Positions 22,646 to 63,079 of a stretch of DNA of 64,000 bases are shown here, in pieces. Where the stretch lies: assembly GCA_964270895.1 (NCBI GenBank), contig OZ185443.1. One strand, 5' to 3'. The translations under genes were made by a program, and so were the position numbers. Under the pieces are notes generated by a model. It was not told the DNA's origin. It saw only the letters and a program-made list of their open reading frames with translations, and searched no databases. This DNA is from Podarcis filfolensis. Taxonomy: Eukaryota. The number at the start of each line of letters is the position of its first letter. Position 1 is the first letter of the stretch.

Positions 22646-23348
22646 TGCTTTCTTCTTCTTCTACAGTAGTATGGCTCATGCTGGAAGAATTTTAAAATCA
22701 GAGTAGTGAGCTGTTAAAAACCTTTGATGCCAAGTGTGTTGTGTTTTGTCATATTCTCTCCCTTAATTACAAAGACTGGGACCCAAATAGATGCACAATT
22801 AGTGCTTTGGGCTTGGAATCTCCTTTGAGATCCAAGTCTTGCAGAGTAGTAAATCGTTTTTGAAAATGAAGGACTTCTCAAAAGCAGTTTGTGATGATGG
22901 CATGGGCTCTTCTGTTCAAAGAAAATGAGCAAAACAAAGCGAGACAGACAGAATCACACTGAGATATGCTTGCCCAAAGAATCATTGAATCCTGGCTAGT
23001 CTCTTTAAAGCCTTGGCAGAATAAATTATTAACATTGTAAACCTTAGGGGCAAACCTGTAAAAAGGTTTACAAACAGTCAACCTATACATTAGATACATT
23101 TTGATGTTTTGATAGATATTATCTCAATATTAATGTGGAGTAGATACTATGTTAAAAAGTATCTACATGTTCTAACAGTATTTTAAAGGGAAACCTGATA
23201 AATTTAAAAAATCAAATAGATGCTTCAGTATGTGCACAAAATACAGAAAAGGGCTGAAATCATTACTGATAACATGTATTTTTAAAAATTATTTTGCTCA
23301 GGCCTTGGAGTTTTCTCAAAAATTTATTGTGATCTATAGGTACAAGCA

Positions 23349-23715
23349 GGGAATGCAGGTGGTGCTGTGGTTTAAACCACTAAGCCTAGAGCTTGCTGAT
23401 CAGAAGGTCGGCGGTTTGAATCCCCTCGATGGGGTGAGCTCCCATTGCTCAGTCCCTGTTCCTGCCAACCTAGCAGTTTGAAAGCACGTCAAAGTGCAAG
23501 TAGATAAATAGGTACCACTCCGGTGGGAAGGTAAACAGCGTTTCCGTGTGCTGCTCTGGTTCGCCAGAAGCGGCTTAGTCATGCTGGCCACATGACCCGG
23601 AAAAACTGCCTGCGGACAAACGTCGGCTGCCTCGGCCAGTAAAGCGAGATGAGCGCTGCAACCCCAGAGTCATTCACGACTAGGCTTAACTGTCAGGGGT
23701 CCTTAACCTTTCCTT
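23349..23715 (+). mobile_element. Sauria SINE, full length
   Basis: A/B boxes, core and tail present. Confidence 0.9.
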
Positions 23716-24731: not shown

Positions 24732-24973
24732 CAGTACTACCTCGAGTTACATATGCTTCAGGTTACATACGCTTCAGGTTACAGACTCCGCTAACCCAGA
24801 AATAGTGCTTCAAGTTAAGAGCTTTGCTTCAGGATGAGAACAGAAATCATGCTCTGGCGGCGCGGCAGCAGCAGGAGGCCCCATTAGCTACAGTGGTGCT
24901 ACAGGTTAAGAACAGTTTCAGGTTAAGTACAGACCTCCGGAACAAATTAAGTACTTAACCTGAGGTACCACTG
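24732..24973. mobile_element. Tc1/mariner-type MITE (CAGTGGTACCTC family)
   Basis: TIRs with TA TSD and subterminal GCTTCAGGTTACA repeats. Confidence 0.9.
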
Positions 24974-27149
24974 TACTTCTTAAACTTTTAAAACATGTCA
25001 ATGCACTTCTAATGATCACCTGACACCCAAAGTTAAGTGAATCATGTGATAGGTAAGGAAGCATATATGCTTGTTGCATAAAATGCAACACAAAGAGGGC
25101 GCACTCCATATATGAAATATTAGACACGGTTGGATGCCGCCAGCGGCCAGCTTTCCTTTCCTTTGCTGTCTGCTCCAATTTCTCTTTGGCTGAGTTGAGA
25201 GCGAGCGGCGTGTTCAGGTCAAGATGTTTGTTCAGAAATAGAAGTACAGTTGCAGCTGTGTTTGGAGCAGGAGGCTAGTTTAAATAGCATTACCATTTAT
25301 CCAGTCCATTAACAGAACTCTGTAAAATAATATCAACTCTACAATAAGCTACAGGGCAGCATCGTAAAATTACAAGCACTTGATGACAGATGGGACGTGT
25401 AAGTAACGAAAAGTGATAGCTTGAATATTCAGGAGACAATACCTGATATTTTTTTTCTGCCCAAATACTTTGTCTCATTGGATGTAGAAAGTTTCTTTGT
25501 GTTTTTCACCTAGCTTAAGTATGAAAAATCATGTTCCCAGTAAAGTCCCAGCAGGTCAGCTACTGGTGGCAGTATTTTTTAAAAATACTGTTGAGATGTC
25601 AGGTTGTTATGTGTTTCTTAAGGGAACTGTAGTTAGTAAACCAGCCATTTTAGGACCAGTTAGGTAATGATTTTGATGTTTGTCTATATCTCTGGTTCAA
25701 CAAGTATTTTTCTTTCTTGGAATGACCTACATTGTCTCCAGTGACCCACATCCTAATACACAGAGCATTAACTATAGCACCTTTTGTGCAGAAAACCATT
25801 ACAGCCTAGTGAGTGCTTATCTGAGACAAATAGATTTTGACTGATTAATTTGATGAGTTAGGCTATAGTTCATTGATTGCCATTAGCTGCAGGGTACTGA
25901 TTTAGGACCCAAAGCTCAGTGGTTTTCCAAGATACTTATATAGGTACTGTATTTCTAAACATGCAAAAGTTAGTCCTTTGATGTAATCCTCCTGGTAGGT
26001 AAATTGTAGCTAATCAAGAAAACCTACAGTGGAAGAACTTGCAATTTATACGTGGATTAATATGGAAAAAGCATACAAGAATGTACTTAAATATTATCAG
26101 GGTTTCCTGAAGCTGAAATTTACTTAATACTTTTCTTTTCTTTTTTTTTTAAATGGTGGAAGGAAAAGGTTTTCTACATAATCTGACTTGTTGCCCTGGA
26201 CTATTCATTTAGTGCATTGGTTCTTGCAGCCCCTAACAAAAGCACAAAGCTTCATGAGGAACCCTTGAAAAAATTCCTCCTGAATTAATTTCTGCCAGCT
26301 ATGATTAAAGTGTGTGGTACTAGATGTGTCAGACACCATAGTTCTTTGCTTCATTTTACTCCTGGCCTCTTTGGCCCCTGCCACAATGAATCCAAGAATG
26401 GTTACGCAGGAATTGCAGGTTACAGTTGCTACGGTTACCGTTGTCCAGTCGTATCGACATCATTACTCATCTAGTGAGTTACCATGATAGCTACCGCTGA
26501 CTCCCATTCCTGGGAACACTAAAGCCGTTTGAGGCAAAAGAGATGAAAGTTCTTCTGACGGCTCTTATGTTTTGTAGATGAGACATTTTTCAGTTTGCAC
26601 GGTCAGCATTAATATCTGTTTCATAGTAGTATCTTGAAGGGAGGTGAGAATAAAAGTTGTACTGCATTCAAATAGCACGGATCGCATGTTATTGCTACAA
26701 AATGCATAGTATAGAGGAAAAATGTGACACATTCCTGTTCGTGTCTTTTTTCTTCTTCTTAACCCACGTATGGGCAGAAAGGGAATATTAGAGATTTGGC
26801 TTTATAAAACAGTTATATCCAACACTGTTTCAGAGAGACTAAATGAGCATGCTGTTTAAACCACTCCTAAGTTTATATCTGAGTAAACTTATTAAGCACT
26901 TTCAGAGTTCTGGCAGGTGACTTGGACAGTTAAAACATAGACAAGGAATGCCCAGTTGTGGGTTTTCATGTTCCTTTCTCCTTTCAAAAATGATTGGGGG
27001 ATCGACAAAGGACATTAATTGGCAGATTAGGGCCTCTGTATATAATAACACTGGTGCCTGTAAATTGTGATAAACATACAGTATGTGGTTGATAAATGGG
27101 TTAAAAGATGGATGAGTATTAGAAAAAAATAATGTAAATTGGAATAAGG

Positions 27150-27302: not shown

Positions 27303-28138
27303 GAACAAGGCAACAGATTTTAATTAGAAGAGCATTGACAACATTGTAACTTTATGTTCTGCTTGTTAGATGGTGTGTGAAAATTGATAAATAGTTGAAG
27401 CAGTGTCTACTTAATTTTGCTTTTGCTTGCTTTTAGAAGCCTGTATTGTTGTGTTTTGAAACGTCATCATAATGAAAACTGATATTTAATTGAGCAACAT
27501 TATGATTGGTTGGACCATAATTGCCAAGAAAATGAACAGCATTGCGGAATGTGAATGCTTGGTGATCGCTGCCGTTGGAAAAAGTGTTAACTCTTTTTGT
27601 AATGCACTTAAAGACTACTTGTTGCCTTCATTGCCTGCTTCTAGGCTTCCAATAAACATCTGGTTGGTAACTGTTGGTAATAGGATGCTGAACTTGGCTG
27701 TCACTCAGCAGAGCTGAAGTGTGCTGTTCAGTTTTTGCTGATATTAGTATATTATTAGTAATATTAGTATGAATCTCTAAACCTCCTTAAATTGGCATTC
27801 TATATAAACTTTAGCCTGGGAAGATTTTTATTTTCTCACTTTTAAAATTAACACTGCAGTTTTGCTTATTGTGAATTAAATGTGGGTGGGTTTTTTTGGG
27901 GGGGGGTGTAGAATGGAAACCATAATGTGTGATCATTTTCTACGGACTGCAGTGCAGGTACTAACATTTTCATAATGCCAGCAATAAGGTGCAAGTGTTC
28001 TTCTCTCTAGTGAAATGGTAGAAAAGTCTCAAAGACGAGCCCTTTTATCCCATCATAAGCACTTATTTTCTGGCAAAAGAAGACTTTTGGGGCCTTTATT
28101 CTACACATGTAATGATTTGATTTCAGCATAATAGTATG

Positions 28139-28546
28139 TGTGATGGGATGGTGAGCTGCTTGTGCGTAAAATCCTGATCCCTCAGAGTTTGGCTAAGTTC
28201 CCAAACCTCTGTCTGTGATGGAGCTCCTTAAGCATGGCTCCATCAATCGCTCGTTGAATCGGACAGTGGGCGTTTACGGAACTTCTTCCAGCATAAAAGC
28301 TCCTTGACGGAAACGCGTCTTCTGGACTCTCGGCGTGACAGTTTCCGCCGAGGAGTGGGTGTGCCTACGGGAGGTCCTGAAACCTCTCCACTGTTCCCGC
28401 TTGAAGTATCTCTGAGCTCTCCCTCCGACTCACTTTCCCTTGTAACTCCACTTCTCCCCCTGCTGGTCCCCTCCTCCGCTGAGTGGTCTCTCTCACCCTC
28501 CATGAGCCCTTTCACCTCCTTCGTCTCAGATGACAGTTCCCTGACA
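28139..28546 (-). repeat. 3' LTR (408 bp)
   Basis: Direct repeat of 31447-31854, preceded on the minus strand by the polypurine tract. Confidence 0.96.
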
Positions 28547-31056
28547 TCCACCTCCCCTCTAGGGCCCCCTTCACCCCCTTCCCTCCCCTCCTCTGCGGGA
28601 GGCGAGGGAGCAAAACCCCTGAAGGAACCTCCCTCATCTTCCGAAGTTTCGAACACTTCCCTCCACCTTTTGCTGTTCCCGGTTTCCAAGTACTCCTCCT
28701 CCTCGGAGTCTGTACCCTCTTCCAACTCCGATTCCCTGAATCCCTCCAGTTCCTCCTCATCGTCGGTGGTGCCAAAGTACTCCCTCCGGAACCTCGCTAC
28801 TGGTTGAGTTTTCCTGGGGAACCTTTGGTGGAACGTTTCGATCAAGACCTCGTCATGGACCTCCTCTGCCTTCACCCAGGTGTTTTCCGACTCCGGTTCC
28901 CCTTCCCACGCGACCAAATACTCCACCTGATTACCCTTCCACCTGGAGTCGATGATTTCCGCCACATAGTTGCGGCTTTCCCTTTCTTCTATGGCTGGCC
29001 CCCGTGTGGATACCCCTTCACCTTCCCCCCTGTATGGTGACAGTAATGACCTGTGGAATACTGGGTGCAGTTTCATGTGGTTCGGTAACCGGAGTCTGAA
29101 AGCCACTGGGTTGACCTGTTGGATGACCTCAAATGGTCCCAATCTTTTGGGTCTCAATTTCTTGCAACTACCCTTGAACGGCAACCCTTGGGTAGATAGC
29201 CAGACCCGACTCCCCACCCTAATTGTTTCACCTTCCCTTCTGCTCTTGTCTGCCTGCCTCTTATATTCTTCTTTGGCCCTTTCTAAGTTGTGTTGGAGTT
29301 GACGATGGATCGCTTCCATTTCTTCTACAAAAAGTTCAGCGGCCGGAACACTCCATCTCTCTCCTCCTTCCCCTGGAAACGCCCTGGGGTGGCACCCATA
29401 ATTAGCCAAAAAGGGGCTCATCCCGGTGGACACATTCTCTGCATTATTGTAAGCAAATTCCGCTAGTGCCAACTTTTCGACCCAATCGTTTTCTCTGTCA
29501 TTGACATAACACCTCAGGTATTGTTGAAGGATACCGTTTGCCCTCTCCGCCTGCCCATTGGTCTCAGGGTGCCTGGCAGTCGAAAAGTTGACCTCTACGT
29601 GCAACAAGCGCATAAGCTTCCTCCAGAATCTGGACGTGAACTGTTTCCCTCTGTCGGAAACCAGCCTCAAGGGGGCGCCATGCAGCCTAAAAATATGTTC
29701 TACAAACAATTTTGCTGTCTCTTCCGCCGTGACTGCATGTGAGCAAGCTACAAAGTGACCCATCTTAGTTAACTGGTCTACTACGACTAGTATGGCGGTT
29801 TTCCCCTGGGATTTGGGCAGATCAGTCATAAAATCTATCGACACCGCCTCCCACGGTCGTTCTGGTGTGGGTAACGGTTCTAAATACCCCGCTGGTGCCC
29901 GCCTTTCTCCTTTGGCTCTCTGGCATTGGTCACACCTTCTCACATACTCCCGTACATCCTCCCTCACCTTGGGCCACCAAAACTCCCTGGTCACCAACCA
30001 CATGGTCTTGTGTTGCCCAAAATGCCCCGCTGTGGGATTGTCGTGCAGCTGTTTGAGTACTCTCCCCCTCAATTCCCCTTCGGGTATATATAGCGCCCCT
30101 TTGTAATACAATGCCCCGTTTCTTTCTTCAAAACCTCCGGGGTCTTCTCCCTCTCCCCTTAAACCTCTGAGCTTATCCTGGGCGTACTCATCATTTACCG
30201 TTCCCTCTACCAGTTCTCTTTGCCCCACCCAGGCCGCACCACACACCCAGTGGTCCTCTGGGATAATATGTCTCTCTTCTGGCGCTCCCTCCCCCTCCAA
30301 ATATTCAGGTTTGCGAGAGAGAGCGTCCGCTCTGATGTTTTCTGGACCTGGCACATAGCAGATTTCAAAATGGAATTTGGAGAACTCCTGGGCCCATCTC
30401 ACTTGTCGTTGGTTGAGCACCCGTGCCGTTCTCCAATACTCCAAATTCTTGTGGTCCGTACATACTTGTACCTTATGCTGTGCACCAATTAGTAAGTGTC
30501 TCCATCTCCGGAACGCTTCGTGAATGGCGAGTAGTTCTCGGTCATATACCGTGTAGTTCCTCTCGGATTTGTTCAGCTTACGCGAAAAGAAGGCACACGG
30601 TCTCCATTCCGACTTATTGCTCCCTGGCTGAAGCAGCACCGCCCCCACCGCGCGGTCTGAGGCATCAGTTTCCACTCTCATGGGTTTTTGTAAATCCACA
30701 TGCAGGAGCTGTTCTTCCGAAGCGAATGCCTTTTTCAATTCCTCAAAAGCGTGCTCCGCCTCCGCCGTCCAAACGAATTTCTTCTTGCTGCTCAGACAGT
30801 CCGTGATGGGAGCCGTTAAGTGGGCAAAGTTCTTGATGAATTTACGGTAAAAGTTCCCAAACCCTAAGAACCTTTGCACATCTTTTTTCGTTTTCGGTGT
30901 CTTCCATTCCAGCACCGCCTGTACCTTGCCTGGATCCATGGCTAATCCCTTGTCTGATAGGCGGTACCCCAGGAATTCCACCTCCTTGGCGTGGAACTGA
31001 CACTTCTCCAATTTCACCCACAACTGGTTTGCTTGCAGCTGGCTCAGCACTTCCCT
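28243..31056 (-). CDS. Pol remnant: RT thumb/connection, RNase H, integrase (HHCC, DDE, GPF), chromodomain, and acidic/basic C-terminal extension
   Basis: Stop-free 935-aa ORF. Motifs: KLEKCQF..EVEFLGY (RT C-terminus), ETDASD/RELLAI/TDHKNL (RNase H), HDNPTAGH..CDQC, SIDFMTD, VSDRGKQF, QAERAN (integrase), RLGPFEV, and EYLVAWEG..ENTW (chromodomain, about 28816-28968). No protease or YxDD motif. Confidence 0.93.
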   Translation of the reverse strand, partial: REVLSQLQANQLWVKLEKCQFHAKEVEFLGYRLSDKGLAMDPGKVQAVLEWKTPKTKKDVQRFLGFGNFYRKFIKNFAHLTAPITDCLSSKKKFVWTAEAEHAFEELKKAFASEEQLLHVDLQKPMRVETDASDRAVGAVLLQPGSNKSEWRPCAFFSRKLNKSERNYTVYDRELLAIHEAFRRWRHLLIGAQHKVQVCTDHKNLEYWRTARVLNQRQVRWAQEFSKFHFEICYVPGPENIRADALSRKPEYLEGEGAPEERHIIPEDHWVCGAAWVGQRELVEGTVNDEYAQDKLRGLRGEGEDPGGFEERNGALYYKGALYIPEGELRGRVLKQLHDNPTAGHFGQHKTMWLVTREFWWPKVREDVREYVRRCDQCQRAKGERRAPAGYLEPLPTPERPWEAVSIDFMTDLPKSQGKTAILVVVDQLTKMGHFVACSHAVTAEETAKLFVEHIFRLHGAPLRLVSDRGKQFTSRFWRKLMRLLHVEVNFSTARHPETNGQAERANGILQQYLRCYVNDRENDWVEKLALAEFAYNNAENVSTGMSPFLANYGCHPRAFPGEGGERWSVPAAELFVEEMEAIHRQLQHNLERAKEEYKRQADKSRREGETIRVGSRVWLSTQGLPFKGSCKKLRPKRLGPFEVIQQVNPVAFRLRLPNHMKLHPVFHRSLLSPYRGEGEGVSTRGPAIEERESRNYVAEIIDSRWKGNQVEYLVAWEGEPESENTWVKAEEVHDEVLIETFHQRFPRKTQPVARFRREYFGTTDDEEELEGFRESELEEGTDSEEEEYLETGNSKRWREVFETSEDEGGSFRGFAPSPPAEEGREGGEGGPRGEVDVRELSSETKEVKGLMEGERDHSAEEGTSRGRSGVTRESESEGELRDTSSGNSGEVSGPPVGTPTPRRKLSRRESRRRVSVKELLCWKKFRKRPLSDSTSD
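28547..28560 (-). other. Polypurine tract (PPT)
   Basis: Minus strand AGAGGGGAGGTGGA immediately abuts the TG of the 3' LTR. Confidence 0.85.
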
Positions 31057-31403
31057 GCCATCAGGGGCCGGACCCAGTCTCTCGCCCCCCCTTCGAGATG
31101 GCCAATCACAAACGCCACTCGCGATGCCTCATCGGGAAAGTCGTTAAACTGCAGTTCAAGAGCATACTGCATCTCTGTCCTAAAGGCTTGGTAGTTCCTG
31201 GGGTCCCCCCCAAACTTCTGCACCATTCCTGGCATCTTTCTTGCTAGTGTAGCGCCTTTTGCCTTTTCTGCATCCTGCGCCCTCCTTTCTTCTAGCCTCG
31301 CCGTTTGCATTGCTAGCTGGAGTTCCAAAACTCTGTACCTTTCTTCCAGAGTTGGACCTTCTCCAGCTCCTGCTGCTCCTCCGGCTCCAGCTGGGTTGCT
31401 CAT
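31044..31403 (-). CDS. Truncated retrotransposon Gag (N-terminal capsid region, PEG10/sushi-like), 119 aa from ATG 31403
   Basis: KFGGDPRNYQAF...FPDEASRVAFVIGHLEGGARDW resembles sushi/PEG10 gag capsid. The frame ends a few codons after the deletion junction near 31056. Confidence 0.85.
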   Translation of the reverse strand: MSNPAGAGGAAGAGEGPTLEERYRVLELQLAMQTARLEERRAQDAEKAKGATLARKMPGMVQKFGGDPRNYQAFRTEMQYALELQFNDFPDEASRVAFVIGHLEGGARDWVRPLMAGKC

Positions 31404-31433
31404 GATGCCTCTCTGCACAAGCTGCTTTCAGGG

Positions 31434-31444
31434 ACTGTCCGATT
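31434..31444 (-). other. Primer-binding site of self-priming type
   Basis: Minus strand AATCGGACAGT, 2 nt after the 5' LTR, is exactly complementary to ACTGTCCGATT inside the LTR (31565-31575). There is no TGG-starting tRNA-type PBS. Confidence 0.8.
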
Positions 31445-31446
31445 GC

Positions 31447-31854
31447 TGTGATGGGATGGTGAGCTGCTTGTGCGTAAAATCCTGATCCCTCAGAGTTTGG
31501 CTAAGTTCCCAAACCTCTGTCTGTGATGGAGCTCCTTAAGCATGGCTCCATCAATCGCTCGTTGAATCGGACAGTGGGCGTTTACGGAACTTCTTCCAGC
31601 ATAAAAGCTCCTTGACGGAAACGCGTCTTCTGGACTCTCGGCGTGACAGTTTCCGCCGAGGAGTGGGTGTGCCTACGGGAGGTCCTGAAACCTCTCCACT
31701 GTTCCCGCTTGAAGTATCTCTGAGCTCTCCCTCCGACTCACTTTCCCTTGTAACTCCACTTCTCCCCCTGCTGGTCCCCTCCTCCGCTGAGTGGTCTCTC
31801 TCACCCTCCATGAGCCCTTTCACCTCCTTCGTCTCAGATGACAGTTCCCTGACA
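31447..31854 (-). repeat. 5' LTR (408 bp)
   Basis: Minus strand reads TGTCAGGGAA...CCCATCACA. No difference from 28139-28546 found by eye. Confidence 0.96.
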
Positions 31855-34800
31855 GTATGTAATGGTATCAACTGTGCAGATGATTTATTAAGGTGTTGGG
31901 TTCTGATTTTTATCTTGCTCAAAGCTTTTTTTTCAAAAATAGTTTTAAACATTAGCCGTGCACCCATATAATAATACATTTTTGCACAAATGAGCACGCA
32001 AGTTCTACGAAGTGGAAGTGTGCTTCACATGGTATCTAAAACAACATGGACTCTGCTGCGTTTTCAAAAGGACCTTTTTTTGGATCATTATTTTGAAATT
32101 TTGATTGAATTGCCCTCCTAAACTTGATAGTCCTAGCTAAAGTAGAATTTCACATGTTAGTACAAATGAAATCATTGGAGTTGGATAACCTTTGTAGTGT
32201 GTATGGTTATTCATAGCAACAAATAAAGTTTTAAGCCAACTGTTTTGGATGCAGTATTTGCCTCAAGTGAACTTTGTCACACGTTATTGTACATTTTGTC
32301 CTCCTTTAGCTCATATTTCTATTTATTTATGCTTCCCCTTTCAAGAACAAAAACAGTCGAAGTCTAGTATTTTCTTAAATCATGCGATGCTGTTTCCTTG
32401 CTTAAAGGAATTGTGCTCTATTGCTTGAAACTGTAAGTTTGCCTTAAGAATGTTTAATACTAATTTCTAACTTTGAGGTTGCAGATTTTATTCAAATTGT
32501 TCTTCCACCCAGTTATACAGGATTATTTAAAACCTACCCATGATTGCAACATATCTGTAGACCCGAGTAAACCTGAGTAAAGTGTGTGTGTCTGTAACAG
32601 AGAGAGAGAGAGAGATGGGTTTTCCAAAGCAAAATACCACATACTGCAAACTTCAGAGCAGTTTACTGCCCATTCCGTCCAGATATAATGAAATAGATGT
32701 CAGTCTAATCCAGTCCAATTCACTAAGTCCTTTTTGTACGGTTAACTTTGAAAGTTTTGATAAATTTGATATAGGAAACGAAATCCCAGTGAAGGAAGTA
32801 ATTAAAGATGCCAGAAGGTCAGGAAATGCCATTATCATATGGCACAGAAAGGGGGCAAGAAATGTTATAAACAGAGCACCATGACTCTCAGCTCATGCTA
32901 TGTGTTCATCTATTTGTACCCATGTAATCTTCATTAACTAATTCAGAAAGCGGGAAGAAGGAATGAAAACAGGATAATGACAGAAGGGACATACAAGTGC
33001 AAGCCATGATCGTAGTGAGAGATTAAAGTTCGCAGTAACTGAATAGCTGAGAGACGCTCAAAGGAAAGTTGATTGCTTCCCCTCCAACCGTTCCAACTGA
33101 TTGAAAAAACCTCTAATTTAAAGTTCTGTTTGTTCTCTGTCTTAAACTATCAGAATTTCCTTTTAGAACTGGGGGAACACTCTGAAAGAATCCAAGGATA
33201 AGAAGTCATTGCTGGCCAACAATTGTTCCTAATCCTCACAAAATGCTGAAGAAATTAAATTTGTTCTTTATTGCTCGAAGTGTTACCTAGGTCACTGGGC
33301 GATGGGAAAATTGAACTGGAAGTTGAGTGGTGCAATCTTTGTTTTGTGTCTAGATGCTTAACCTTAGACACGACAAGGCATCTTAGAGTGTTGTGGGAAC
33401 GAGGTTCAGAGTATTAAGACCAAGACTTTTATTACCCTGGATTTATAATGGGATGTGCTGTCAGGAGATGAAAATGTTGTGTTTACATTTGACTATTAAA
33501 TGATCATTTAATTAACACCTAAGTGTGGGTGGGTGGGGGAAGGACTTGTAAAATTCTTTACAGCATTTATTTTTTCTGTGGAGGCTTAAACATTCGTGCT
33601 GCCTAAAAGTACATCTGCAAAAGGCATTTATGAACTTCTTCAAGACAGATGGACAGTTTTAACCTGGATCTTTCACCACAGGGTGCTTCAAATATAGTAC
33701 AGTATGTTCCTAAAAATATTTTTTTCACTTTAATGTCAAGAAATGTATGTGCAAAAGTTACAAATACTTGCAAAAATTGGAATAACCTTTAACAGTTTTT
33801 ATGAAAACAACTGTCCTGTTAATCACCCAACCTATATTCGTATATGTAAAACATGTTTACTTGCGTAAGAGTTCTGTGGTGGAAATTCATGTGAAACTGA
33901 ACGCCTTCTGATAAGTAAGATCTTAAATTGTTGTATTTACCCTCTGTTGTGATCTCAAAGAATAAAATGAAATTGGCAATAAAATGCAACTCTGCTTTGC
34001 ATCATATAAGCCAATTTCTGTTTTGGAGAAACTGGTAGCTGTCCAAACATGATGCTTTTATTGTAGACATCCAAAAAATCTTTCTGAACAAAAGCTCAAT
34101 TCAGAGATTATTCCAAAACATTGTTTGCACTGACCATATTTCAGAACTTAAGCCACACTTGGAGCTTGCAAACATATACAAACTGTGGTTTAGAGTCACT
34201 TGTCTCCCCCTATGGTGGTGAAGTTGGAGGAAAAGCTGTAATTACAGTATGTCACTTTGCACAAACCCTGGGCTGCAGATCCAATTCAAACAACGGCTTC
34301 AAATTCAGCATAATTGGTCTACTGCAAACAGCAGTTTATAAATTCAAATATTATACAGGTCCATAATTAGGCTTCCTTGACCAGGATTTACTGTGATGTT
34401 TGAATAGAGTCCATATATAAAAGAAGGTACTGTATAATAAAACACCTACTCTGGAATTCAGTTGCTATCTGTCTTAGAACCACTTATGGAGGTTCAAAAT
34501 CGCATAGAGAATACCAACACCAGAATAGCCCTTGGACTACTTGTTCAAATCGGAGCCTGTTTCTGCCTACCTGCACATGTGAAACTAGCAGGGAGACCTT
34601 AAAGTAGACGTGTCTTCATGAAAGCAATGTCATATGAGCATCCTATATGTCTTGAATATCTGTGTTAAAAGGCAATATAAGAATTGTAGTAACGAAACTG
34701 TTCTGTGTTTCTATTCTCAAAAACTTCATGTGTACCTTTTAAAAATGCACGTCAATACAGAATATTGATCAATGTCGCATTACTCTATTTTACATTCCTG

Positions 34801-35855: not shown

Positions 35856-36081
35856 CAGTGGTACCTCAGGTTACATACGCTTCAGGTTACAGACTCCCCT
35901 AACCCAGAAATAGTGCTTCAGGTTAAGAACTTTGCTTCAGGATGAGAACAGAAATCGGGCTCCGGTGGCACGGCAGCCGCAGGAGGCCCCATTAGCTAAA
36001 GTGGTGCTTCAGGTTAAGAACAATTTCAGGTTAAGTACGGACCTCCGGAACGAATTAAGTACTTAACCCGAGGTACCACTG
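35856..36081. mobile_element. Tc1/mariner-type MITE (CAGTGGTACCTC family)
   Basis: TA-CAGTGGTACCTC...GAGGTACCACTG-TA. Confidence 0.92.
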
Positions 36082-36329
36082 TATGTGTGTTTGAGAGTTC
36101 GTTTGGAGTTTGTTCTGTGAGAGAGTTCTGTGTCTGTATCCTGTATATAGTAACTTGTGAGTCTGCTGTAAATAATAAACCTATAAGTAACCAAGTTACT
36201 GGTAGCAGCGTCTTGTTCCTGCATCATCATGCCTGCAACTGACTGTTTCTGGACAGTCTGTGTATGGTTTGCTATATTCAATAGGTTCTGGCTAAGATCC
36301 TTCAACACAGCTTGTCAGCATTCTATGCA

Positions 36330-40633: not shown

Positions 40634-41129
40634 CAGTTCTTTTTTGGGGGGGGTACTAAAGGGTACAAGGGACGTGGGTGACACTGTGGGTTAAATCACA
40701 GAGCCTAGGACTTGCCGATCAGAAGGTCGGCGGTTCAAATCCCCGCGACGGGGTGAGCTTCCGTTGCTTGGTCCCTGCTTCTGCCAACCTAGCAGTTCGA
40801 AAGCACATCAAAGTGCAAGTAGATAAATAGGTACTGCTCTGGCGGGAAGGTAAACGGCGTTTCCATGCTCTGCTCTGGTTCTCCAGAAGTGGCTTAGTCA
40901 TGCTGGCCACATGACTCGGAAGCTGTACGCCGGCTCCCTCAGCCAATAAAGCGAGGTGAGCGCCACAACCCCAGAGTCGATCACGACTGGACCTAATGGT
41001 CAGGGGTCCCTTTACCTTTAAAGGGTACAAAGTACTAGCACCTCATCCCAATATTTTAAAAGTGTGGTACAACTTCATGGTGAGTTCCGACACCTTTCCC
41101 CCCTCTAAAAATAAATTTAAAAAGCACTG
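40634..41129. mobile_element. hAT MITE (CAGTGCTTTTTT family) split by a Sauria SINE
   Basis: CAGTTCTTTTTT at 40634 and AAAAAGCACTG ending at 41129. TSD-like AGTATACA/AGTATATG. Confidence 0.7.
40669..41018 (+). mobile_element. Sauria SINE nested in a hAT MITE
   Basis: 12-bp TSD TAAAGGGTACAA (40657-40668 and 41019-41030). Confidence 0.94.
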
Positions 41130-44362: not shown

Positions 44363-44563
44363 TACCCAGGTGTCAGAGAACTCAGTGCCTCCACTGTACC
44401 TTTGCCAAGTCTTTTTATGGAAAATGAGTGCTTTATGTCGACATGACATTGTAGAGGACTGGAGGAGGTAAAATAGTTTCCAGAATACATACTGATTCTC
44501 TTTGTTTTACTACAATATTGATGGTTCTTTCTGTTTTTGTTTTAATTGCCTGCTCCTCAGAAA

Positions 44564-46931
44564 CTGGTGTTTACCTCTATGGATGTTGGTGATCTGACAC
44601 TAAGTAAAAGCGAAACAAAAGAAGTGCCATGGTCAGATCACTTCCTGGTGCAACTGGACTTCTCCGTGACCCTTCCCCTCTGCAGGGAGGTGGGACCAAT
44701 TCAGATGGTCGGCCCCCGCCACTTAATGGATCCAAATGGTTTCCAGAGAGTGGTAGGGGATGTTTTATCCCATGTTGATGGCCTTTCAGCTGATTCCCTG
44801 GTGGCCCGCTGGAATGTGGAGTTAACCAGGGCGATTAACTGTTTGGCTCCGAAGCGCCCTCTCCGATTGCATGGAGTCCGAACAGCCCCGTGGTTTTCCA
44901 CGGATCTGAGGGCAATGAAACAATCGTTGAGACGGCTAGAGCGCTGGTGGCGGATGACCCATTCTGAAGCTGACCGGACACGGGTTAGAGCTCAATGTCG
45001 AGCCTACCAAGTGGCGGTAGCGACGGCGAAGAAGACTTTCTTCACCGCCTCTATTGCATCTGCAGAAAACAGCAGCATGAGACTTTTTCAGGTGGTTCGC
45101 AATCTAGCGGAACCACCTGCTACATCGGGGTCCAGTACGGGCCACATGATCTCCTGCAATGATTTTGCAAAGTTTTTTGCAGATAAAGTCGCTCAGATTC
45201 GGGAAGAGGTAGATGCCACCGTGGGAGCAGGGCCGAGGCGAGCCAGAGTCCTGTCTAGTCAAATTGCGTGGGATCAGTTCCAATCTGTTACCTCCGAGGA
45301 TGTGGACAGGCTGCTTGGACGAGTGAAACCAACCACCTGTCTCCTTGATCCTTGCCCATCCTGGCTCATAAAAGCTAGCCGGGAAGGGCTGGGCAATGGG
45401 CTTCGTGGAGTGGTGAATGCTTCCCTCCGTGAGGGAGCCTTCCCAGACCCGCTGAAAGAGGCGGTTATTAAACCGCTTCTTAAAAAACCATCTTTAGATG
45501 CGGCCACAATGGCCAGCTATCGCCCAGTCTCAAATCTTCCATTCTTGGGCAAGGTGATTGAGCGAGTGGTTGCTGAACAATTCCAGGCACGCCTGGAAGA
45601 AGCGGACCATTTGGATCCCTTCCAGTCAGGATTCAGGCCTCATCATGGGACTGAAACTGCCTTGGTTGCACTGGTTGATGATCTCCGGCGGGCTAGGGAC
45701 AAAGGTGAGAGCTGTTTCCTAGTTCTGCTGGATCTCTCAGTGGCATTTGATACCATCGACCATAACATCCTTCTGGACCGTCTTGAGGGGCTGGGAGCTG
45801 GGGGCACTGTCATACAGTGGTTCTGCTCCTTTCTCCTGGGCCGTGTTCAGAAAGTGGTGGGGGGGGGATGAGTGTTCAGACCCCTGGGCTCTCACTTGTG
45901 GGGTGCCTCAGGGTTCTGTCCTCTCCCCCATGCTTTTCAACATCTATATGCAGCCGCTGGGAGAGATCATCAGGGGGTTTGGGCTGGGTGTTCATCAGTA
46001 TGCGGATGATACCCAGCTCTACCTCTCTTTCAAATCAGAACCAGTGAAGACGGTGAAGGTCCTGTGTGAGTGCCTGGAGGCGGTTGGAGGTTGGATGGCA
46101 GCTAACAGATTGAGGTTGAATCCTGACAAGACAGAAGTACTGTTCTTGGGGGACAGGAGGCGGGCAGGTGTGGAGGATTCCCTGGTCCTGAATGGGGTAA
46201 CTGTGCCCCTGAAGGACCAGGTGCGCAGCCTGGGAGTCATTTTGGACTCGCAGCTGTCCATGGAGGCACAGGTTAAATCTGTGTCCAGGGCAGCTGTTTA
46301 CCAGCTCCATCTGGTACGCAGGCTGAGACCCTATCTGCCTGCGGACTGTCTTGCCAGAGTGGTGCATGCTCTGGTTATCTCCCGCTTGGATTACTGCAAT
46401 GCGCTCTACGTGGGGCTACCTTTGAAGGTGACCCGGAAACTACAACTAATCCAGAACGCGGCAGCTAGACTGGTGACTGGGACCGGCCGCCGAGACCACA
46501 TAACACCGGTCTTAAAAAACCTACATTGGCTCCCAGTACGTTTCCGAGCACAATTCAAAGTGTTGGTGCTGACCTTTAAAGCCCTAAATGGCCTCGGCCC
46601 AGTATACCTAAAGAAGCGTCTCCACCCCCATCGTTCTGCCCGGACACTGAGATCCAGCGCTGAGGGCCTTCTGGCGGTTCCCTCACTGCGAGAAGCCAAG
46701 TTACAGGGAACCAGGCAGAGGGCATTCTCGGTAGTGGCGCCCTCCCTGTGGAACGCCCTCCCACCAGATGTCAAAGAGAACAACAACTATCAGACTTTTA
46801 GAAGACATCTGAAGGCAGCCCTATTTAGAGAAGCTTTTAATGTTTGATGTATTAGAGGATTTTAATATTTTTTGGAAGCCGCCCAGAGTGGCTGGGGAAG
46901 CCCAGCCAGATGGGCGGGGTACAAATAATAA

Positions 46932-52747: not shown

Positions 52748-53073
52748 TACTATAATCTTTTCATTTGGTATTTTAAAACTTTGGTTCCTATGCACTCAGC
52801 AGGCCTGGTATTAACGCGTGTGGTACTAACAGGTATAAATGTAAATCTTGTTGCATGAAGTACTTCCAGGTGGTGTTTCTGCTTTTCTATGGCATTCCTT
52901 TTAGGCATTTTGCTGTGGGCATTCCTTTCCAAGAACAGAACAGATTATATTTCTGATTGCATGTGGAACTTAAATGGCAGAATTCAAAAAGCTTTGACCA
53001 TTCATGGACAATGTTAAGACTTCTGATGCAAATTTGGGATAAGATTGTAAATATCACTTAGATACAGAATGTT

Positions 53074-53435
53074 GGGACGCAGGTGACACTGTGGGTTAAA
53101 CCATAGAGCCTAGGACTTGTCGATCAGGAGGTCGGCGGTTCGAATCCCCGCGACGGGGTGAGCTCTCGTTGCTCGGTCCCTGCTCCTGCCAACCTAGCAG
53201 TTCAAAAGCACGTCAAAGTGCAAGTAGATAAATAGGTACCGCTCCGGCAGGAAGGTAAACGGCATTTCCATGCACTACTCTGGTTCACCAGAAGCGGCTT
53301 AGTCATGCTGGCCACATGACCCGGAAGCTGTACGCCGGCTCCCTCAGCCAATAAAGCGAGATGAGCGCCACAACCCTAGAGTCGGTCACGACTGGACCTA
53401 ATGGTCAGGGGTCCCTTTGCCTTTGCCTTTACCTT
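53074..53435 (+). mobile_element. Sauria SINE, full length
   Basis: B box GGTTCGAATCC and 11-bp TSD TACAGAATGTT (53063-53073 and 53436-53446). Confidence 0.95.
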
Positions 53436-62541: not shown

Positions 62542-62767
62542 CAGTGGTACCTCGGGTTACATACGCTTCAGGTTACAGACTCCACTAACCCAGAAATAGT
62601 ACCTCGGGTTAAGCACTTTGCTTCAGGATGAGAACAGAAATCGTGCTCCGGCGGCGCGGCAGCAGTGGGAGGCCCCATTAGCTAAAGTGGTGCTTCAGGT
62701 TAAGAACAGTTTCAGGTTAAGTACGGACCTCCGGAACGAATTAAGTACTTAACCCGAGGTACCACTG
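62542..62767. mobile_element. Tc1/mariner-type MITE (CAGTGGTACCTC family)
   Basis: TIRs intact, with flanks TG/TA. Confidence 0.9.
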
Positions 62768-63079
62768 TAGTTGCTTTCAGCCGCTTGTCTTTTGTCTCTA
62801 TCTGCTTTAAGTTTATTTGAGTTATAACCACTTTTTTAAAAAAAATATTGTCTTTATTTATTTTCATAAATTTTCAGAAAATTACCTTTTATCCCTCTCC
62901 TCTAAGTCTTCTGTGCTTTTTTTTTTTTTTTGCATGTTTGTATCTTATGCTGGTCTGTGACTGTAATAAAGTTTGATAATAATGATGTTGTACATGAAGC
63001 CAAACAGAACACACACAAACACCACCCGCATCACCAGAAAAATATGGAAATGAGACATTTTTACCACTATACAGTGGTA

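Follow-up and report, generated by a model that had tools for sequence, protein, structure and literature searches.

Tandem LEDGF/HRP2-ligand-like motifs in the integrase tail of a Podarcis chromovirus, a candidate integration tether

A long terminal repeat (LTR) retrotransposon of the Ty3/Gypsy chromovirus type lies on the minus strand at positions 28139-31854 of a 64,000-nucleotide stretch of Podarcis filfolensis DNA (contig OZ185443.1, assembly GCA_964270895.1; the whole stretch is called the window below). Its integrase chromodomain is followed by an acidic, predicted disordered tail that holds two similar units, RFRREYFGTTDDEEELEGF (unit 1) and RWREVFETSEDEGGSFRGF (unit 2). On their residues, these units are strong candidates for the class of short motifs by which cellular proteins bind the integrase-binding domain (IBD) of LEDGF (PSIP1) and HRP2 (HDGFL2). 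We infer, with a probability of roughly 60%, binding, a partner and an insertion bias: the tail would mimic cellular LEDGF/HRP2 ligands and tether the intasome to readers of methylated lysine 36 of histone H3 (H3K36me) on transcribed chromatin. Host-factor tethering explains the insertion sites of retroviruses and yeast retrotransposons, and the tethers of vertebrate LTR retrotransposons are almost unknown; here a 19-residue peptide is defined, its anchors are named, and the family that carries it is mobile today, so that the question is open to direct testing.

Motifs that bind TFIIS N-terminal domains (TNDs), the fold to which the IBD belongs, are defined by three parts: a short helix, which is obligatory and has F/V/L/I anchors; a linker of 8-16 residues, acidic, rich in G/S/T and phosphorylated by CK2; and an FxGF hook, which no known LEDGF/HRP2 partner lacks or can do without and which is optional for other TNDs (PMC9987994). 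In MLL1 (KMT2A), the anchors are F129/F133 in the helix and F148-L-G-F151 in the hook, and the hook consensus is D/E-x-E-x-F-x-G-F (PMC8022399); the same arrangement is seen in the validated DPF3a peptide LFGSTSESDTSTFHGF, whose position -2 is a Ser that can be phosphorylated (PMC7337902). Both lizard units fit this layout of IBD-binding motifs (IBMs) and TND-interacting motifs (TIMs), with which the original prediction, made from the letters of the window, had proposed to align them. The hook agrees with the published consensus (PMC8022399, PMC7337902) in unit 2, which reads FRGF in all intact copies, and in unit 1 of several sublineages, which read FEGF, FVGF or FKGF and include exact fits to D/E-x-E-x-F-x-G-F such as DDEESFEGF and EEEEDFVGF. 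The helix part places W/F...VF anchors at i and i+4, like F129/F133 of MLL1, and the linkers of 8 and 9 residues fall within the published range. AlphaFold2 (AF2) gives the whole tail a predicted local distance difference test (pLDDT) score of 42-59, against values above 90 for the chromodomain, with low-confidence helices at amino acids 751-758 in the helix part of unit 1 and, shorter, at 797-799 in that of unit 2; the model shows no packing of the tail on the chromodomain. An RVxF-type PP1 motif considered in RWREVF was rejected by eye, V and F being adjacent.

Minus-strand translation reproduces exactly the two units that the original prediction had placed after the chromodomain in the integrase open reading frame (ORF), at 28794-28738 and 28668-28612, and its description of an acidic context rich in CK2-type sites fits a tail of 89 residues that is 30% D/E and carries seven S/T-x-x-D/E sites, two of them inside the linker of each unit. 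The same prediction had quoted an MLL1 sequence in part and judged it strikingly similar to both units. That sequence, completed to 25 residues and used as a query against PDB sequences, proved correct in every letter: chains 3U88_M, 2MTN_A and 6EMQ_A contain exactly RRFRAVFGESGGGGGSGEDEQFLGF, the structurally solved LEDGF-binding segment of MLL1. The likeness was also borne out by scoring. With a two-block matrix built only from 20 distinct retroelement units and a background of 190,770 residues, the MLL1 segment scores 34.1 bits (16.4 + 17.7) and the best background sequence 9.8, and either MLL1 block by itself about equals the top score among roughly 180,000 background positions. When the tail was shuffled with its composition preserved, 0.2% of trials contained one or more full units and 0.0125% two or more; judged by composition, the two units are not a product of chance.

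Relatives were gathered by word-based and exhaustive profile searches, giving 331 proteins (144,253 residues), most of them integrases of chromoviruses from fish, amphibians and squamates. In 16 of these proteins there are 25 sites at which an acid-rich linker leads into Phi-x-G-F, every one directly after the chromodomain. The carriers form one clade in a tree of the SH3-chromodomain region (Shimodaira-Hasegawa-like approximate likelihood ratio test support of 98), the only non-carriers in it are two truncated rows, and every member with an intact tail bears the units. Squamate sister elements of Anolis, Vipera, Python and Rhineura in the tree set are without them, and none was found in the Anolis, snake, amphibian or fish relatives among the 331 proteins; taken together, tree and protein set establish a single, clade-restricted origin of the units. 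Named members of the clade come from Podarcis muralis and P. lilfordi, the source of all the closest named proteins, and are joined by one ENA contig (ERZ27260045) and one Logan contig (ERR14657319).

Within the clade, tails have one or two units and the spacer differs in length and sequence, and the anchors (R, W/F, F, T/S and the xGF hook) are retained. In unit 1, five residues (F759, T762, E766, G770 and F771) hardly vary among 12 clade sequences; in unit 2, the W, F and FxGF anchors are present in all intact clade tails; and the xGF hook is the most conserved part of each unit. Compared with the Logan contig L002, synonymous differences are saturated (proportion of synonymous differences, pS, 0.56-1.0). 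The proportion of nonsynonymous differences (pN) reaches 0.445 in the inter-unit spacer and 0.20 in the units, whose residues thus evolve at half the rate; for the chromodomain and the integrase core it is 0.21 and 0.10, respectively. Because unit residues are kept while synonymous sites are saturated, selection acts on the peptide and not on nucleotides next to the polypurine tract (PPT); read from codon changes, this amounts to protein-level purifying selection on the units. Conservation of the units in sister elements while the linkers drift, which the original prediction had put forward for checking, is thus what the anchors and the spacer display.

The tail follows a chromodomain that has kept its fold and lost most of its methyl-lysine cage. 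Foldseek matches the domain to HP1/CBX proteins with target-normalised TM values of up to 0.92. The methyl-lysine cage of dHP1 is formed by Y24, W45 and Y48, and alignment to dHP1 (1KNA) puts a Glu opposite Y48 in the window chromodomain. At cage position 3 (Y48), an aromatic residue occurs in 0/17 clade members versus 178/219 other chromoviral proteins, and at position 1 (Y24) in 1/17 versus 177/219; at position 2 (W45), Trp is found in 13/17 versus 215/219. The window copy has a Tyr one position off cage position 1, which HMMER aligns to Y24 with a gap, and the other clade members have no aromatic residue at that offset position. Two of the three cage aromatics are therefore gone from the clade, the Trp being mostly kept, and the domain looks, from these residues, like a reader that has been disabled or retargeted in an element that is still a chromovirus by ancestry. 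The element has the LTRs and target duplication, the order of reverse transcriptase (RT), RNase H and integrase, and the chromodomain at the integrase C-terminus that are features of chromoviruses, and its Tf2-1-type SH3 domain and nearest relatives also place it in the Tf1/sushi group. Cage loss and tail gain coincide in the same clade, as a correlation only.

Two sets of relatives show other states of tail and cage. In a deeper branch of the clade (P. muralis proteins P0012, P0155 and P0156), the tail is a variant with YFDDWLF, an S/T-only linker, FQGF, an acidic stretch and LSGF, and the chromodomains have also lost the cage Trp (LAREGT). In a sister family from Anolis carolinensis (P0225-P0227), the cage is intact (W.GF) and a conserved DEEENLGF stands at a comparable place in the tail; it is hook-like, with Asn at the first hydrophobic position, and may be a forerunner of the motif or a relic of it.

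If the tail is a LEDGF/HRP2 ligand, it would work as tandem host-like short linear motifs of the IBM class, each made of an aromatic helix, a flexible acidic S/T-rich linker and an [F/L/M]xGF hook. In PSIP1/LEDGF or HDGFL2/HRP2, the TFIIS-N-terminal-type IBD would take up the helix aromatics and the xGF aromatics in its two hydrophobic pockets. A basic patch separates these pockets, and the acidic linker would run across it in a contact that CK2 phosphorylation would strengthen; two units per integrase in a multimeric intasome would provide avidity. The integration complex would in this way be tethered to transcribed chromatin marked by H3K36me2/3, and the tail would supplement or replace methyl-lysine reading by the cage-less chromodomain. 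A fuller evolutionary version, to which we give slightly less than even odds, is that the lineage abandoned methyl-lysine reading by the chromodomain and gained tandem LEDGF/HRP2-binding peptides, either through mimicry or by taking up a KMT2A-like segment of the host, shifting integration from heterochromatin to H3K36me-marked transcribed genes.

Several observations weigh against LEDGF/HRP2 binding or its use by this element. In the window sublineage, unit 1 has L or M instead of F at the first hook position (LEGF/MEGF), and the F148A change in MLL1 abolishes binding (PMC8022399); unit 2 has Gly instead of E/S at position -2; and both linkers are close to the lower limit of 8-16 residues. 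Binding by isolated IBMs is weak: MLL1 1-160 has a dissociation constant of ~15 µM and needs menin to bind tightly (PMC8022399). Searches of PDB sequences with the 94-residue tail (phmmer) gave no match, and with a 25-column unit profile (hmmsearch) only chance matches to CylK (E ~6) and no IBM chains, results that the shortness of both queries for HMMER could explain and that therefore do not count against the reading; an ESM-Atlas feature search with the tail returned scores of <=0.78 and no informative match. The named carriers belong to a single lizard genus, the cage loss may be unrelated to the tail, and the window copy, in which protease and most of RT are absent, probably yields no working pol of its own.

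Conservation alone names no partner, and embedded aromatics in acidic stretches are a common binding mode; the units might instead be selected linear motifs for a partner outside the TND fold, whether histones, in a chaperone-like contact of acidic and aromatic residues, an adaptor for import or trafficking, or a further protein of the element. In the tail, AF2 is confident of nothing beyond two short helices, which is in keeping with such a partner, but we regard it as unlikely: the units match the IBM/TIM class in their three-part layout, in spacing and in the exact D/E-x-E-x-F-x-G-F hook, and a two-block match to MLL1 of 34 bits would not be expected of a generic acidic-aromatic patch. It is distinctly improbable that the units bind another TND (IWS1, TFIIS, Elongin A, MED26 or PNUTS) so that the element would be tethered to the machinery of elongation or to Mediator and not to a reader of H3K36me. 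The two-pocket, basic-patch surface is common to TNDs, and TIMs of helix and acidic linker serve several of them (PMC9987994), but FxGF is optional in those ligands, universal in known LEDGF/HRP2 ligands and the most conserved part of the units here. Even less can be said for a role in the element's own cycle, in which the tail would fold back on the basic integrase C-terminal region or the LTR-encoded end as an autoinhibitory or chaperoning segment, or would serve polyprotein processing or stability, its IBM likeness being coincidental; the conserved, strongly basic pol C-terminus that follows the tail is a plausible intramolecular partner, but the invariant aromatic anchors, the xGF hook and the specific MLL1 match would be left unexplained, and AF2 does not pack the tail on the chromodomain. 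A by-product of low-complexity acidic sequence or of nucleotide constraint beside the PPT, as the acidity of the tail and its position next to that tract could suggest, is scarcely credible and was rejected on the shuffle test and the saturated pS, the anchors being kept at saturated synonymous sites and the spacer drifting twice as fast as the units.

The LEDGF/HRP2 reading sets the lizard tail beside several known systems. With cellular IBMs and TIMs (KMT2A/MLL1, JPO2, POGZ, IWS1 TIM3, ASK, MED1 and DPF3a), it shares the three-part layout, the hook consensus, the acidic S/T-rich linker of CK2 type and the disordered location, and MLL1 has almost the same helix part (R[F/W]R.VF) and hook (F.GF). 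Unlike cellular IBMs, which lie in host transcription factors, the lizard motif lies in a retrotransposon integrase and in two tandem units; its linkers have 8-9 residues versus 14 in MLL1, and in some copies the hook opens with L or M. POGZ, a domesticated pogo transposase, is the nearest transposon-related carrier of an IBM, yet it is a host gene. HIV-1 integrase binds LEDGF through a folded catalytic-core dimer interface, whereas the lizard element would use a disordered, host-like peptide and compete in the mode of cellular ligands. The proposed outcome is that of lentiviral integrase and LEDGF/p75, an integration complex held at the LEDGF IBD on H3K36me-marked transcribed chromatin (PMC5053271; PMC9987994). 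In murine leukaemia virus, a motif of ~16 residues around a key Trp in the integrase tail binds the ET domain of BET proteins (PMC5053271); the lizard tail would follow the same principle, but, acidic and with an FxGF hook, it differs from this gammaretroviral tail in motif chemistry and would differ in partner. Canonical chromoviral chromodomains read methylated H3 and send insertion to heterochromatin, according to the account of Gao et al. (2008) given in PMC5053271. The lizard clade belongs to the same element class, has its chromodomain at the same integrase C-terminal position and retains the fold, but it is without two of the three cage aromatics and has an added tail that would point to euchromatic readers.

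A literature search found no description of IBM/TIM-like motifs in the integrase of Ty3/Gypsy or other retrotransposons, in keeping with the original prediction, which knew of none in Ty3/Gypsy elements; for fly LTR elements that prefer active genes, a LEDGF-like mechanism was raised in 2023 and stated to have no supporting data (PMC10018349). If LEDGF/HRP2 tethering is correct, HIV and a lizard retrotransposon would have come to use LEDGF convergently through different interfaces, and a motif of host transcription factors would have been copied in nature by a mobile element. The targeting of the element would have switched along with the decay of its chromodomain reader, and it would be the first LEDGF/HRP2-dependent retroelement outside lentiviruses as well as the first to act in the cellular-ligand mode. 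For steering integrating vectors, a tail of this kind might eventually attract interest as a small peptide tag.

The element itself is young (Table 1). Contigs of three other public runs (two of one organism, one of another) join 28132 to 31854 with a single GTATG, an empty-site joint that omits 3721 nt, the 3716-nt element plus 5. The insertion is recent because this empty site is present in other runs, and it is either polymorphic or specific to one lineage; identical LTRs, the target duplication and the empty-site allele lead us to call the family live. Pfam identifies RNase H, the integrase zinc finger, rve, Tf2-1 SH3 and the chromodomain (amino acids 696-743) in the 935-codon ORF, with E-values of 7.5e-23, 7.3e-11 and 4.5e-18 for the integrase H2C2 zinc finger, rve core and Tf2-1-type SH3, respectively. 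At an internal deletion junction at ~31051-31062, a gag fragment meets the RT remnant, its C-terminal part, and protease is missing together with most of RT. Contigs of four other runs part from the window at exactly 31051/31062, so longer family members exist, such as the 1280-residue P. muralis pol protein P0001; since only a gag fragment lies upstream, joined to the RT remnant, the window copy is a young, internally deleted, non-autonomous family member. Further copies of the element were sought within the 64-kb window and none was found. Just downstream of the 5' LTR, GACAGTCCCTGA (31425-31446, minus strand) is nearly complementary to the LTR start TGTCAGGGAACTGTC (31840-31854), consistent with self-priming of the Tf1/sushi type.

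Table 1. Features of the retrotransposon, with positions in the window (aa, amino acids of the pol ORF).
Feature	Position	Strand	Evidence or detail
Target-site duplication GTATG (5 bp)	28134..28138; second copy 31855-31859	.	LTR flanks
3' LTR, 408 nt, TG..CA	28139..28546	-	100% identity to 31447-31854
LTR(U3)-encoded pol C-terminal extension, ~100 codons	28246..28548	-	Ends in conserved basic LLCWK...PLSDS.SD segment
Polypurine tract AGAGGGGAGGTGGA	28547..28560	-	Abuts 3' LTR, within ORF
Disordered acidic tail, aa 746-834, between chromodomain and PPT / 3' LTR	28549..28815	-	AF2 pLDDT; composition
Unit 2, aa 795-813	28612..28668	-	Helix part RWREVF, linker ETSEDEGGS (9), hook FRGF
Inter-unit spacer, acidic	28669..28737	-	Variable length and sequence; pN above that of units
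Unit 1, aa 753-771	28738..28794	-	Helix part RFRREYF, linker GTTDDEEE (8), hook LEGF
Chromodomain, HP1/CBX fold	28822..28965	-	Pfam 1.3e-9; AF2 pLDDT; Foldseek
Integrase	29029..30075	-	H2C2 zinc finger 29911-30075, rve core 29566-29862, Tf2-1-type SH3 29029-29214
Open 935-codon pol remnant: RT C-terminal part, RNase H, integrase, chromodomain, acidic tail, LTR-encoded C-terminus	28243..31050	-	ORF translation and Pfam
gag N-terminal fragment, ~120 codons	31044..31418	-	Translation; weak DUF4939 match
5' LTR, 408 nt	31447..31854	-	Identity to 3' LTR; outer boundaries confirmed by empty-site joint 28132->31854 (other runs)

Downstream of the tail, the pol ORF runs through the PPT, where the encoded peptide GGEGGP.GEVD is kept in relatives, and reads the first ~300 nt of the 3' LTR in element orientation. 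The U3-encoded C-terminus is conserved in L002 and partly in a second contig, L001, and because it is conserved while synonymous sites are saturated, the LTR encodes a selected pol C-terminus; its basic end is perhaps a nuclear-localisation or chromatin-contact signal.

The long ORFs near the insertion are a non-LTR RT remnant of the long interspersed nuclear element (LINE) type and ORFs without assignment. The remnant consists of two overlapping ORFs in different frames at 44546-46847 (plus strand), both matching RVT_1 (E-values 2.6e-13 and 1.6e-17), as in a frameshifted copy. Several interspersed repeat families of 180-300 nt, with 63-94% identity and an appearance like short interspersed nuclear elements or solo LTRs, are also found in the window (for example, 23344-23649, 40663-40968 and 53068-53373; 24748-24975, 35856-36083 and 62542-62769), and one such family flanks the element at roughly equal distances, outside it.

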